Shown here piece by piece: positions 21,817-26,528 of a stretch of 64,000 nt of DNA. The notes under the pieces were generated by a model. The model had not been told where the DNA came from and did not search any database. It saw nothing but the letters and a program-made list of their open reading frames with translations. Source of the stretch: Macrostomum lignano (taxonomy: Eukaryota); assembly GCA_002269645.1 (NCBI GenBank), contig NIVC01000402.1, forward strand, positions 40,078 through 104,077. The letters are read 5' to 3'. Positions within the stretch are counted from its first letter, which is position 1, and every line of letters begins with the position of its first letter. The position numbers and the translations under genes are program-made.

Positions 21817-23788
21817 CAGGGGTAGGCGAACTCGGGCCGCGGGCCGCATGCTGACTGCAAAGCCTGTCTATCCGGCCCTTTATCCGGGTCCTTTGAAACT
21901 TCACAATAGCAATCTGGCTGGGTCAAGGTTTGTGTCTCCTTTCTTCTCTCCCCTCTCTCCCTCTTCTCTCTCTCTTCTCTCCCTTCCCCCTCTTCTCTCC
22001 TTTCTTCTCTCCCTTCCCCCTCTTCTCTCCCCTCTCTCCCTCTTCTCTCCTCTCCCTTCCCCCTCTTTTCTCCTCTCTTCTCTCCCCTCTCTCCTCTTCT
22101 CTTCTCTCTTCTCTCCCCTTCCCCCTCTTCTCTCCCTTACCCCCTCTTCTTTCCTCTCTTCTCTCCCCTTCCCCCTCTTCTCTCCCCTTACCCTCTTCTT
22201 TCCTCTCTTCTCTCCCCTTCCCCTCTTTTCTCCTCTCTTCTCTCCCTCTCTCCCTCTTCTCTTCTCTCTTCTCTCCCTTCCCCTCTTCTCTCCTTTCTTC
22301 TCTCCCTCTCTCCCTCTTCTCTCCTCTCTTCTCTCCCCTTCCCCCTCTTCTCTCCTTTCTTCTCTCCCTCTCTCCTCTTCTCTTCTCTCTTCTCTCCCCT
22401 TCCCCCCTCTTCTCTCCTTTCTTCTCCCCTTCCCCTCTTCTCTCCCCTCTCTCCCTCTTCTCTCTCTCCCCTTCCCCCCTCTTCTCTCCTCTCTTCTCTC
22501 CCTTCCCCTCTTTTCTCCTCTCTTCTCTCCCCTCTCTCCCTCTTCTCTTCTCTCTTCTCTCCCCTTCCCCCTCTTCTCTCCCTTACCCCCTCTTCTTTCC
22601 TCTCTTCTCTCCCCTTCCCCTCTTCTCTCCCTTACCCCCTCTTCTCTTCTCTCTTCTCCCCCTTCCCCCCTCTTCTCTCCTTTCTTCTCTCCCCTCTCTC
22701 CCTCTTCTCTCCTCTCTTCTCTCCCCTTCCCCCCTCTTCTCTCCTTTCTTCTCTCCCCTCTCTCCCTCTTCTCTTCTCTCTTCTCTCCCTTCCCCCTCTT
22801 CTCTCCTTTCTTCTCTCCCTTCCCCCTCTTCTCTCCCCTCTCTCCCTCTTCTCTCCTCTCCCCTTCCCCCTCTTCTCTCCTCTCTTCTCTCCCCTTCCCC
22901 CTCTTTTCTCCTCTCTTCTCTCCCTCTCTCCCTCTTCTCTTCTCTCTTCTCTCCCTTCCCCCTCTTCTCTCCCTTACCCCTCTTCTTTCCTCTCTTCTCT
23001 CCCCTTCCCCCTCTTCTCTCCCTTACCCCCTCTTCTTTCCTCTCTTCTCTTCCCTTCCCCCTCTTCTCTCCCCTTACCCCCTCTTCTTTCCTCTCTTCTC
23101 TCCCTTCCCCTCTTTTCTCCTCTCTTCTCTCCCTTCCCCTTCTTTTCTCCTCTCTTCTCTCCCTCTCTCCCTCTTCTCTTCTCTCTTCTCTCCCCTTCCC
23201 CTCTTCTCTCCCCTTACCCCTCTTCTTTCCTCTCTTCTCTCCCCTTCCCCCTCTTCTCTCCCCTTACCCCTCTTCTTTCCTCTCTTCTCTCCCCTTCCCC
23301 TCTTCTCTCCCCTTACCCCTCTTCTTTCCTCTCTTCTCTCCCCTTCCCCTCTTCTCTCCCCTTCCCCAATCTTCTCTCCTTTCTTCTCTCCCCTCTCTCC
23401 CTCTTCTTTCCTTTCTTCTCTCCCCTCTCTCCTTCTTCTCTTCTCTCTTCTCTCCCTCTCCCCCTCTTCCTCCTTTCTTATCTCCCCTCTCCCCTTCTTC
23501 TCTCTCCTCTCCCTTCTTCTCTCTCCTCTCCCCCTCTTCTCTTATCTCTTTTCTCCCTCCCCCCCTCTTCTCTCCTCTCTCCCCCTCTTCTCTCCCCTCT
23601 CCCTTTTCTTCTTGTCTCTCCTCTTATCTTCTTTCTTACCTCTTCTCTCATCCAGTCTCTCGCCTCGTCTATGTTCTCTCATCGCACATCTTTTATTCTC
23701 TCTCCTTTCCACTCTCACCTGCCCCTCAGCTATGAGCTGGATTCTTCATCTGGCCCTTCTTTGAGGTAAAACAGTTTGCCAACCCCTG
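21817..23788 (-). mobile_element. Same MITE family, copy A, inverted relative to copy B, with an internal ~1.75-kb polypyrimidine expansion
   Basis: Ends CAGGGGTAGGCGAAC and GTTTGCCAACCCCTG. Subterminal sequences are reverse complements of copy B (e.g. ATGAGCTGGATTCTT, TTTGAAACTTC..AATAGCAATC). Flanks CTCTAAGC/CTCTAGTC match at 6/8. Confidence 0.85.
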
Positions 23789-24045
23789 CTCTAGTCCATC
23801 GATACAAGCGCGCCAACACTGTACGCTCACACAGGGTGCACAGCGGCCCTGACTGTCTAATCGTCAGGCATGTACACTCTCTGTGATTTGGGGGCTGGCC
23901 CTCACGGGTGTAGAATAGCAGGACAACCCCCTGACCGATTTTCGTGCACAATTAGAGAGAAAATCTAAAGAAGAAAACCTAAACCGAAGACTAAAATATG
24001 CATCAGAAATGTCGCTTTTTTAATAACCAGACTGCTTTCACCAAC

Positions 24046-24274
24046 CTTGGACAAGTCGCGATAGTTAGTAGGCAGGCTGAGATCCAACTCTGAGCAGTCG
24101 TAGTTGGAGATGACCCAAGGGAAAATGGGATACTGGTTCAGATCGTTGAAGGTCCGGCCGGCCACAGTGTTCAGGTACATCAGGTAGTCAAAGTTGGAGA
24201 TCTCTCTGCGCTGCCATTTTTGCGTCATGTTTGATAGCTTGAAAATTTGGCGAGGCAGCGCCAGCGAGGATTTC
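24046..24274 (-). CDS. nbea: Neurobeachin exon, start of BEACH domain ([41 protein letters not shown]...RDLSK)
   Basis: Acceptor TCTCAG|G, donor AAG|GTTGGT; 229 nt, phase 2 to 0. Confidence 0.96.
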
Positions 24275-24349
24275 CTGAGAGTGATGGAGTAGCGAATTTT
24301 CATTTAATATGATTAGCACTACTATTAATTACTGACATTGCATTAGTTA

Positions 24350-24770
24350 TTTAACTTGGATAGATTAGCAATCCATTCTACTAATGACCTAGATTAGCAA
24401 TCCACTCTACTAATGACTTGGATTAGCAATCCACTCTACTAATGACTTAGATAGATTAGCAATCCACTCTACTAATGACTTAGATAGATTAGCAATCCAC
24501 TCTACTAATGACTTGGATAGATTAGCAATCCACTCTACTAATGACTTGGATAGATTAGCAATCCACTCTACTAATGACTTAGATAGATTAGCAATCCACT
24601 CTACTAATGACTTAGATAGATTAGCAATCCACTCTACTAATGACTTAGATAGATTAGCAATCCACTCTACTAATGACTTAGATTAGCAATACACTCTACT
24701 AATGACTTGGATAGATTAGCAATCCACTCTACTAATGACTTGGATAGATTAGCAATCCACTCTACTAATT
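24350..24770. repeat. 33-nt minisatellite GATAGATTAGCAATCCACTCTACTAATGACTT(A/G), ~12 copies
   Basis: Period read directly. Confidence 0.95.
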
Positions 24771-24830
24771 GTGACTAATTGTGAACTGACTAATACATTG
24801 AAATGACCAACCATGAGATTAGGAGCTCAC

Positions 24831-24933
24831 CGAGTCTGCTGCAGGCCGTACTTGATGCCAATGCCGATTCGTGGCAGGCTGTTCACCACTTTTTTAACGC
24901 TCTCCTGATCCTCGAATGCAAACATCACGGCGC
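24831..24933 (-). CDS. nbea: Neurobeachin exon, end of PH domain (SAVMFAFEDQESVKKVVNSLPRIGIGIKYGLQQTR)
   Basis: Acceptor AACCAAAG|GC (AAG type), donor CG|GTGAGC; 103 nt, phase 1 to 2. Confidence 0.93.
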
Positions 24934-25029
24934 CTTTGGTTTTGAATAGCAATAGTATATATATAAATAAGTAATCATAATAGTGATGGATAAAGATATA
25001 ATGAGCATATTATTGACACATGGACTCAC

Positions 25030-25147
25030 TTCTATTAGCCATAAAGATTTCCAAGGCAACATTTTTGTGCAAATAGCGCCGACTGAAGATGGCCCGGATT
25101 TCGTTGAAATGCCACTTCCCGTGCAGATGATCCACGTAGCGCAGCAC
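25030..25147 (-). CDS. nbea: Neurobeachin exon, PH domain ([39 protein letters not shown])
   Basis: Acceptor TTTACCAAG|GTG (AAG type), donor AGAA|GTGAGT; 118 nt, phase 0 to 1. Confidence 0.94.
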
Positions 25148-25511
25148 CTTGGTAAACGGATTGAAATATACAGCATATATACTGTTTGTCTACTTATAGT
25201 AAGCCAAAGGAATATTTAAATAAAAAAGTTAATAAATAATTCAATTGCCGATATGCATAGAAAAATAACAAAAAATTATTTGAATTCTTGACAATACGAG
25301 AAGACATGAGCTTAGGACACATCAGTAGTATGAGGTCAAGCAAGCAAAGTTTGTGTTAATGAGATTATAAGGCTAAGTAGAAAGCCTTCATAGTTTTAGC
25401 TGCCCTAATGGATTTCTAGTGTATTTTTCGTGCACACTTTCGATTGTCGGTCTAAAAGCGAAAATAGTTTTAAAACAGGGATGATAACCTAACCCTAACC
25501 ATGGCCTAGTA

Positions 25512-26528
25512 CAGGGGTCGGCAAACTGTTTTACCTCAAGGGCCGGATAAAGAATCCAGCTCATGGCCGCGGGCGAGGAGAGAGGAGAGAAGAGAAGAGG
25601 GGAGAGAGAAGAGAGAGAGGAGAGAGGAGGGTAGAGAGGAGAGAGGAGGGGAGAGAGGAGAGAAGAGAAGAGAAGAGGGGAGAGAGAAGAGAGAGAGGAG
25701 AGAGGAGGGTAGAGAGGAGAGAGGAGGGGAGAGAGGAGAGAAGAGAAGAGGGGAGAGATAAGAGAGAGAGGAGAGAGGAGGGTAGAGAGGAGAGAGGAGG
25801 GGAGAGAGGAGAGAAGAGAAGAGAAGAGGGGAGAGAGAAGAGAGAGAGGAGAGAGGAGGGTAGAGAGGAGAGAGGAGGGGAGAGAGGAGAGAAGAGAAGA
25901 GGGGATAGATAAGAGAGAGAGGAGAGAGGAGGGTAGAGAGGAGAGAGGAGGGGAGAGAGGAGAGAAGAGAAGAGGGGAGAGATAAGAGAGAGAGGAGAGA
26001 GGAGGGTGGAGAGGAGAGAGGAGGGGAGAGAGGAGAGAGGAGAGAAGAGAAGAGGGGAGAGAGAAGAGAGAGAGGAGAGAGGAGGGTAGAGAGGAGAGAG
26101 GAGGGGAGAGAGGAGAGAAGAGAAGAGGGGAGAGATAAGAGAGAGAGGAGAGAGGAGGGTAGAGAGGAGAGAGGAGGGGAGAGAGGAGAGAGGAGAGAAG
26201 AGAAGAGGGGAGAGATAAGAGAGAGAGGAGAGAGGAGGGTAGAGAGGAGAGAGGAGGGGAGAGAGGAGAGAGGAGAGAAGAGAAGAGGGGAGAGAGAAGA
26301 GAGAGAGGAGAGAGGAGGGTAGAGAGGAGAGAGGAGGGGAGAGAGGAGAGAGGAGAGAGGAGGGGAGAGAGGAGAGAGGAGAGATAAGAGAAGAGAGAAG
26401 AGGTAAGAGGTAAGAGAAGGAAGCAGAGAAGAGACACCATCTTTGAGCGGGCCGGATTGCTATTTCGAAGTTTCAAAGACCCGAGGGCCGGATAGAGAGG
26501 CTTCGCGGGCCGGCGTTCGCCGACCCTG
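25512..26528 (+). mobile_element. Non-autonomous hAT-type MITE, copy B, with an internal ~850-nt polypurine expansion
   Basis: TIRs CAGGGGTCGGCAAAC ... GTTCGCCGACCCTG; perfect 8-bp target-site duplication GCCTAGTA at 25504-25511 and 26529-26536. An 8-bp TSD with CAG-initiated TIRs is typical of hAT. Confidence 0.88.

Follow-up and report, generated by a model that had tools for sequence, protein, structure and literature searches.

Inverted copies of a transposon-like element around three exons of a neurobeachin/LRBA-type gene in Macrostomum lignano, a candidate locus for a 450-nt circular RNA

We analyzed a 64,000-nt stretch of the Macrostomum lignano genome (GenBank assembly GCA_002269645.1, contig NIVC01000402.1, positions 40,078 to 104,077 of the forward strand), which we call the window and to whose own numbering all positions below refer. 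The window lies within one large minus-strand gene, which runs from beyond 63994 to a stop codon near 7767, and two copies of a transposon-like element, here named A and B, stand in opposite orientations in the introns on either side of three consecutive exons of this gene. An earlier note, made from the sequence alone, had proposed that pairing between the two copies could lead to back-splicing of the three exons into a 450-nt circular RNA (circRNA) with an endless open reading frame (ORF), or to skipping of the same exons in frame. We describe the gene, the element copies and the predicted pairing of their transcripts, and then weigh these proposals against the alternatives.

The host gene and its three-exon block

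The host gene is, judging by its predicted protein, a neurobeachin/LRBA-type gene whose product has a PH-BEACH-WD40 architecture. Pfam matches were obtained for Beach (E = 2e-81) and PH_BEACH (E = 6e-18); among solved structures, two PH-BEACH units came closest, that of LRBA with E = 2.9e-137 (1T77) and that of neurobeachin with E = 1.6e-131 (1MI1). About 18 exons were placed by tblastn with orthologues, including the WD40 exons and the C-terminal ...HHEFQERY. In protein searches with the window exons, the best full-length orthologues were 50–62% identical, with none above about 62% over about 1,000 residues; neurobeachins from nemerteans, molluscs, annelids, crustaceans and insects obtained nearly equal scores, and the collection included no close annotated relative. 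The exons and introns around the two element copies are given here in the order of transcription, with a slash at the splice site and intron letters in lower case.

42109..42202, minus strand: exon E0, 94 nt; PH-domain stretch ...VQIVGQLSVTKAELYFEMDADSEENKKLDEK (...KKLDEK), phase-0 end, donor AAG/gtaagc
25148..42108, minus strand: upstream flanking intron, 16,961 nt; holds copies B and C, a (GA)150 tract and many minisatellites
25147-25030, minus strand: exon E1, 118 nt; phase-0 start, acceptor ...accaag/GTG, donor /gtgagt, ends ...MANR
24933-24831, minus strand: exon E2, 103 nt; donor /gtgagc
24274-24046, minus strand: exon E3, 229 nt; acceptor ...tctcag/, donor AAG/gttggt, phase-0 end ...NYRDLSK
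21750..24045, minus strand: downstream flanking intron, 2,296 nt, 86% of which is copy A
21337..21749, minus strand: exon E4, BEACH domain, PIGALNP..., 413 nt as assembled
20138..20570, minus strand: exon E5, 433 nt; BEACH domain, ALESEF...NRWNNAAG

Exons E1 to E3 sum to 450 nt (118 + 103 + 229), run from phase 0 to phase 0 and maintain the frame VLRY...RDLSK without a stop, and they contain in-frame ATGs at nucleotides 106, 127, 268 and 316 of their coding sequence (1-based), corresponding to Met36, Met43, Met90 and Met106. The lengths, the phases, the absence of a stop and the presence of in-frame ATGs had been given in the earlier note, whose coordinates agreed exactly with ours, as did the limits that it gave for the neighboring exons, namely 42109 for the end of the upstream one and 21749 for the start of the downstream one. 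The block does not form a separable structural unit, as it cuts through both PH_BEACH and BEACH.

Examined by eye, the donor of E3 (AAG/GUUGGU) does not follow the GURAGU consensus at +3 and +4, and the pyrimidine tract of the E1 acceptor (...uauuucaauccguuuaccaag/) is interrupted, so that these two outer sites look weaker than the internal ones (GUGAGU, GUGAGC and ...cucucag/). At the downstream limit of the block, short gene-model fragments from many animals start with intron read-through of the form ...FQ/PIGALNP, and the number of fragments carrying it indicates that the phase-0 intron before PIGALNP is probably widely conserved among animals. Exon E4 itself shows an apparent 1-nt deletion at 21370-21381 on the minus strand, where ...DDVSLPP is followed by a shift of one base and the exon ends at /gtacgg; after the frameshift the translation matches orthologues (LPPWA.TPEEFVRINRM), and the unshifted reading meets a stop at 21347. 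The remaining exons look intact, which makes an indel introduced in assembly near CCGCC-TGGG the likeliest explanation, with a genuine inactivating mutation as the alternative.

The element copies and the pairing of their transcripts

The introns that bound the block contain two copies of one element, A and B, and the present analysis added a third, C, which was absent from the earlier note.

21817-23788, minus strand: copy A, 1,972 bp; inverted relative to B and C, with an internal CT-rich array about twice as long as that of B
25512-26528, plus strand: copy B, 1,017 bp; internal GA-rich 73/151-bp minisatellite with units 92–93% alike
29478-30353, plus strand: copy C, 876 bp; in the orientation of B, older and diverged, 4.3 kb upstream of E1 in the same intron as B

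For A and B, we arrived at exactly the boundaries and the inverted orientation described before, and the distances previously put at about 260 and 365 nt came to 257 nt between A and the E3 donor at 24045 and 364 nt between B and the E1 acceptor at 25148. Read in the sense of the transcript, copy A thus starts 257 nt past the E3 donor, and it stops 67 nt before the E4 acceptor.

To judge from their sequences, A, B and C are three separate insertions of one non-autonomous hAT-like element. The termini of A and B both read CAGGGGT.GGC.AAC / ...CCCTG, and the terminal inverted repeats, CAGGGGT(A/C/T)GGC(A/G)AAC... / ...GTT(T/C)GCC(A/G)ACCC(C)TG, are about 14–17 nt long with 1–2 mismatches and fit the hAT criterion of 5′-YARNG. 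Copy B is flanked by a target-site duplication that agrees at 8 of 8 bp (GCCTAGTA/GCCTAGTA), and those of A (CTCTAAGC/CTCTAGTC) and C (AGCTTAAT/AACTAAAT) each agree at 6 of 8; the ends of C are also mutated (AAGCGGTTGGCAAG...CCGTTCCTG). Between A and B, identity is about 85% over 66 nt at the exon-proximal ends and about 78% over 91 nt at the exon-distal ends, and a BLAST alignment of the whole elements gave 75–76% over 967 nt, with B aligning to either half of the array in A. This similarity is certainly not due to chance, since A and B formed the only dispersed repeat pair at E<1e-8 when the 64-kb window was compared with itself.

In each element, an expanded polypurine/polypyrimidine minisatellite is flanked by unique ends of about 65 nt and about 110 nt, and the copies differ mainly in the length of this array (876, 1,017 and 1,972 bp in all, of which the unique parts make up about 180–250 bp). 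Neither A nor B has any capacity to encode a transposase, their sole ORFs being low-complexity translations of the satellite. The copies are larger than is usual for a miniature inverted-repeat transposable element (MITE; usually below about 800 bp), and because this excess is entirely internal minisatellite, we consider "satellite-bearing MITE-like element" a safer name than MITE. Copy B looks young, with its perfect target-site duplication and homogeneous array; copies A and C appear old and decayed, and nothing in their sequences indicates that selection keeps the arrangement in place.

MITE-like elements with internal micro- or minisatellites are familiar from the "pearl" elements of bivalves and from DINE-1/mini-me of Drosophila. 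The present element resembles these in having short unique inverted-repeat ends and target-site duplications around an array of variable length, and differs from them in belonging to a family for which no described match was obtained. Neither the literature, searched for the terminal repeat sequence, nor a metagenome scan with the 26-nt terminus yielded a match. The terminus may resemble that of the mammalian hAT-Charlie element MER20.

Transcribed into pre-mRNA, B has a C+U content of 91% and A a G+A content of 94%, and C is also CU-rich, which bears out the earlier description of one copy as giving a CU tract and the other a GA tract in addition to complementary ends. Duplex energies were calculated with RNAduplex, using dinucleotide-preserving shuffles of B as controls. 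B and A paired at −1558 kcal/mol through 972 pairs (538 GC, 369 AU and 65 GU) arranged in 113 helices, the longest helix being 27 bp and the longest run of Watson-Crick pairs only being 19 bp. The specificity of the pairing was supplied by the unique ends of the elements: the exon-proximal ends (25512-25580 with 23715-23788) gave −114.5 kcal/mol, compared with −37.9 ± 4.6 kcal/mol for shuffles (z = −16.7), and the exon-distal ends gave −120.7 kcal/mol (z = −11.3). Co-folding had been suggested earlier as a check on whether the duplex would be too weak once the low-complexity tracts were aligned; it yielded a strong duplex, with the z-scores of the ends just given. A global minimum free energy (MFE) fold of a 2,325-nt segment of pre-mRNA (300 nt per arm and everything between) contained 245 pairs between the arms, of which the innermost fell exactly at 25512:23788 and closed a 1,723-nt loop with the three exons. 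An MFE control in which one arm was reversed differed by just −60 kcal/mol and carried no information, because a reversed GA tract remains GA-rich.

Other tracts in the introns compete for the same partners, including copy C and the following two.

30914..31213, plus strand: (GA)150 microsatellite, (UC)n in the pre-mRNA; −473 kcal/mol with A
18657..19632: tract D, a CT-rich 22/44-bp minisatellite, GA-rich in the pre-mRNA

Copy C paired with A at −1230 kcal/mol, and B paired with tract D at −1216 kcal/mol. Every strong partner of A, namely B, C and (UC)150, lies in one upstream intron, and each therefore brackets the same three exons. The best competitor for B within that intron (38338-38727) reached −323 kcal/mol compared with −1558 kcal/mol for A, and pairing across the exons likewise prevailed over pairing within the intron in the MFE fold. 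Tract D rivals A as a partner of both B and C; its pairing brackets E1 to E5 rather than E1 to E3 and would thus favor a different circle. We considered tract D as a fourth copy of the element and rejected this, as the similarity of its flanks to the element ends was at the level of shuffled controls. A further array at 11672-14295, which like D is purine-rich in the pre-mRNA and lies with it in the 9-kb intron after E5, paired with B at −938 kcal/mol.

The candidate circle and its alternatives

The structural preconditions for back-splicing are in place at this locus: inverted copies lie near canonical splice sites, and their exon-proximal ends are predicted to form a strong and specific duplex. 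We read the sequence as that of a credible but ordinary circRNA candidate of a known mechanism, the circle itself being predicted, and we regard the arrangement as best understood as an accident of neutral insertions rather than as an evolved coding or skipping module. The prospect that these neutral intronic insertions yield a detectable, low-level and non-coding E1-E3 circle seems to us about even.

The course of events would be as follows. As the polymerase leaves E3, the unique end of A would be made first and would pair with the unique end of B, after which the GA and CU tracts would lengthen the duplex. This would close the 1.7-kb loop and bring the E3 donor beside the E1 acceptor, and occasional back-splicing would then produce a 450-nt circle of E1, E2 and E3 as a minor non-coding by-product, perhaps accompanied by adenosine-to-inosine (A-to-I) editing of the duplex, with normal linear splicing remaining the main outcome. 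As A is transcribed ahead of D, it would also get the first chance at B.

The closest known parallel is provided by laccase2 and PlexA of Drosophila (Kramer et al. 2015, PMC4617980). In laccase2, circularization requires inverted DNAREP1_DM repeats with 75% identity over 106 nt and 69% over 272 nt, about 55 nt of complementarity is enough, and back-splicing can proceed co-transcriptionally where repeats are long (about 400 nt); these lineage-specific repeats are missing from D. yakuba, and so is the circle (PMC4617980). The A/B pair is no less complementary than the laccase2 repeats and lies no farther from the splice sites (257 and 364 nt), and its predicted duplex at the exon-proximal ends exceeds the complementarity found sufficient there. 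The present locus also shares with laccase2 and PlexA the presence of inverted non-autonomous DNA transposons in both flanking introns of an invertebrate gene, near the splice sites, as well as imperfect identity (70–85%), at least one long flanking intron and lineage-specific insertions, and its 17-kb upstream intron fits the pattern for circRNA hosts cited in the same paper (PMC4617980). It differs in enclosing three exons rather than one, in having a short downstream intron (2.3 kb), and in having arms of 1–2 kb that are mostly polypurine/polypyrimidine minisatellite, such that most of the pairing depends on composition and tolerates shifts in register; moreover, unlike the laccase2 and PlexA circles, the E1-E3 circle is only predicted.

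As in human circles driven by Alu elements (Jeck 2013, Zhang 2014, Liang & Wilusz 2014 and Ivanov 2015, cited in PMC4617980), pairing across introns would join a downstream donor to an upstream acceptor, rival partners are present (here B, C and (UC)n for A, and A and D for B), and ADAR editing is to be expected. Whereas Alu is a short interspersed nuclear element (SINE), the present element is a satellite-cored DNA transposon, and with a single family in three copies, competition inside introns is much weaker than in genes dense in Alu. A 945-nt circle has been reported from mouse Nbea (PMC10837906), which speaks for the capacity of the gene family only and not for E1-E3.

Several results weigh against the account that we favor. 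More than 90% of the kilobase-scale energy of the B-A duplex is plain GA-versus-CU composition, since shuffled B still paired with A at −1412 to −1442 of the −1558 kcal/mol. Per pair, the unrelated tract D also matches A as a partner of B (−1.57 versus −1.60 kcal/mol), and RNAduplex takes no account of kinetics, bound proteins or helicases. Finally, a search of a protein collection of 5.8 billion sequences, transcript assemblies included, found no ...DLSK/VLRY... junction, although this is a weak test.

In an alternative explanation, the insertions are inert: they would be neutral remnants whose duplex is unproductive in the cell, owing to RNA-binding proteins, helicases or fast linear splicing, and neither a circle nor an altered isoform would be detectable. 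The arrangement is not surprising, being expected by chance in about 1/6 of cases (1/2 for inverted orientation, about 1/3 for equal intron phases), and this is in keeping with the explanation, as are the decayed target-site duplications of A and C and the 15–25% divergence, which imply that the gene has long tolerated the copies, and the extent of tandem arrays in the window (38.6%), which makes low-complexity intronic DNA the norm here. Kramer et al. also note that circularization is governed by more than simple thermodynamics, which alone does not settle the outcome (PMC4617980). Against it stand a geometry and a predicted pairing strength beyond those of cases validated by experiment, and the GA and CU arms cannot fold on themselves and therefore stay free to pair across the exons. 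We consider inert insertions somewhat less likely than not.

It is also conceivable, though improbable in our view, that the low-complexity tracts act without pairing with each other, by changing the splicing kinetics of E1 to E4. The 0.86-kb CU tract upstream of E1 would then serve as a PTB/hnRNP-type platform, and the 1.76-kb GA tract would act as an SR-protein sponge or, through an R-loop or H-DNA, slow elongation in the downstream intron. The RNA of B holds 84 CUCUCU and 40 UCUU motifs and that of A holds 105 GGAGA, A ends 67 nt from the E4 acceptor, and purine-rich RNA on a pyrimidine-rich template favors R-loops; against this, the case consists of motif counts, and similar tracts are common throughout the gene. 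A duplex of about 970 predicted pairs might instead be cut, as a long hairpin RNA, to yield endogenous small RNAs, or might trigger double-stranded-RNA sensing, rather than affecting splicing. The duplex is made up of 113 short helices with a longest helix of 27 bp and a longest Watson-Crick-only run of 19 bp, however, and it would be short-lived, being intronic, and would give rise to GA/CU small RNAs without specific targets, all of which makes this outcome highly improbable.

The remaining alternatives give the three exons a function of their own, and here the proposals of the earlier note fared less well. The 450-nt circle could be translated by a rolling-circle mechanism from an in-frame AUG into a repeating 150-residue polypeptide made of the C-terminus of PH and the N-terminus of BEACH. 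In line with the note's stop-free circular frame, the length is a multiple of 3, four ATGs are in frame, and no stop occurs over two turns; the "endless ORF" is a matter of arithmetic, because both bounding introns are of phase 0, and it is generic for any coding exons between two such introns. A few stop-free endogenous circles from humans and viruses are documented to undergo rolling-circle translation (PMC11263353), and the candidate shares with circEGFR, circ-E-Cad and the tau 12->7 circle, which are among the translated infinite-ORF circles reported, a length divisible by 3, an in-frame AUG and the absence of an in-frame stop (PMC11263353). It differs from them in being a predicted circle and in having as its unit a fragment of two interlocked domains, which is unlikely to fold, and no protein spanning the junction was found in the low-power search of the protein collection described above. 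We accordingly attach next to no weight to translation of the circle. Trypsin would cut the product of the candidate circle precisely at the K/V junction.

The most novel idea is that satellite-bearing elements such as A and B work as a zipper robust to mutation, in which the unique ends set which exons are looped and the GA and CU tracts, able to pair in any register and to tolerate G-U pairs, lock the duplex, making the E1-E3 circle an abundant neural RNA that is translated by rolling circle into a repeating PH/BEACH fragment. In its general form, this idea would have opposed CT and GA arrays promote circularization even after the elements have decayed. We hold it to be most unlikely.

Regulated in-frame skipping of E1 to E3 through A-B pairing, with a functional linear isoform joining 42109 to 21749 as its product, is hardly better placed, and we judge it very unlikely. 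Skipping would preserve the reading frame, looping-out of exons can favor skipping as well as circularization, and neither the E3 donor (GUUGGU) nor the tract of the E1 acceptor fully matches the consensus. It would, however, remove positions 43–98 of 99 of the PH_BEACH profile, the linker and positions 1–59 of 276 of the BEACH profile, gutting both domains; in the PH-BEACH crystal constructs 1T77 and 1MI1, which comprise 414 residues, the 150 residues correspond by alignment to positions 47–196. HGKW and PIGALN were spaced by 142 residues in 120 of 120 long orthologues and isoforms retrieved, including those of species with up to 24 predicted isoforms, and no junction of the E0/E4 type (...LDEK/PIGALNP) occurred among 360 retrieved proteins, in which the odd sequence contexts before PIGALNP were intron read-through or gene-model artifacts. 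The in-frame skipping module of the earlier note is therefore not supported, with none of the 120 sequences lacking the segment and both domains cut, although sporadic skipping of E1 to E3 may occur as noise.

Overall, the coding and skipping proposals add little to a candidate of known mechanism, and we return to the low-level, non-coding circle as our preferred reading. If the circle exists, the locus would provide a clean invertebrate case of transposon-driven circularization, and would show whether polypurine/polypyrimidine satellites can replace sequence-specific repeats in joining splice sites. The young-looking copy B, which is perhaps polymorphic or missing in relatives, as the laccase2 repeats are in D. 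yakuba, offers a natural test.

Satellite arrays and minor observations

Satellite-rich introns are the background state of this locus. Tandem arrays make up at least 38.6% of the 64 kb (34 arrays with a Tandem Repeats Finder score of at least 200 and units of 2–84 bp); examples lie at 11672-14295, 49255-51865, 34103-35016, 54753-55786 and 45068-45981, and runs of (ACAG)n, (GACA)n and (AGAC)n of 600–900 bp are found among the intronic arrays. One array lies between the exons of the block themselves.

24354..24769: minisatellite with a 33-bp unit, 13 units; in the 556-nt intron between E2 and E3 and hence within the looped-out segment

No credible plus-strand gene was found between 21 and 27.5 kb, and an Rfam scan of the whole window returned no family at threshold. 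Lastly, we observed a dispersed motif of about 55–100 nt, CACGCTCACACAGGGTGYACAGC.GGCCCTGAC...TCGTCAGRCA..GTAC, with an internal CCTGAC/GTCAGG stem, in three copies on the plus strand (23823-23875, 26629-26683 and 8210-8286). Two of these three are found to the right of where A and B inserted, at distances of 35 and 100 nt, despite the opposite orientations of A and B, and the motif may represent an older small repeat or a preferred neighborhood for insertion.

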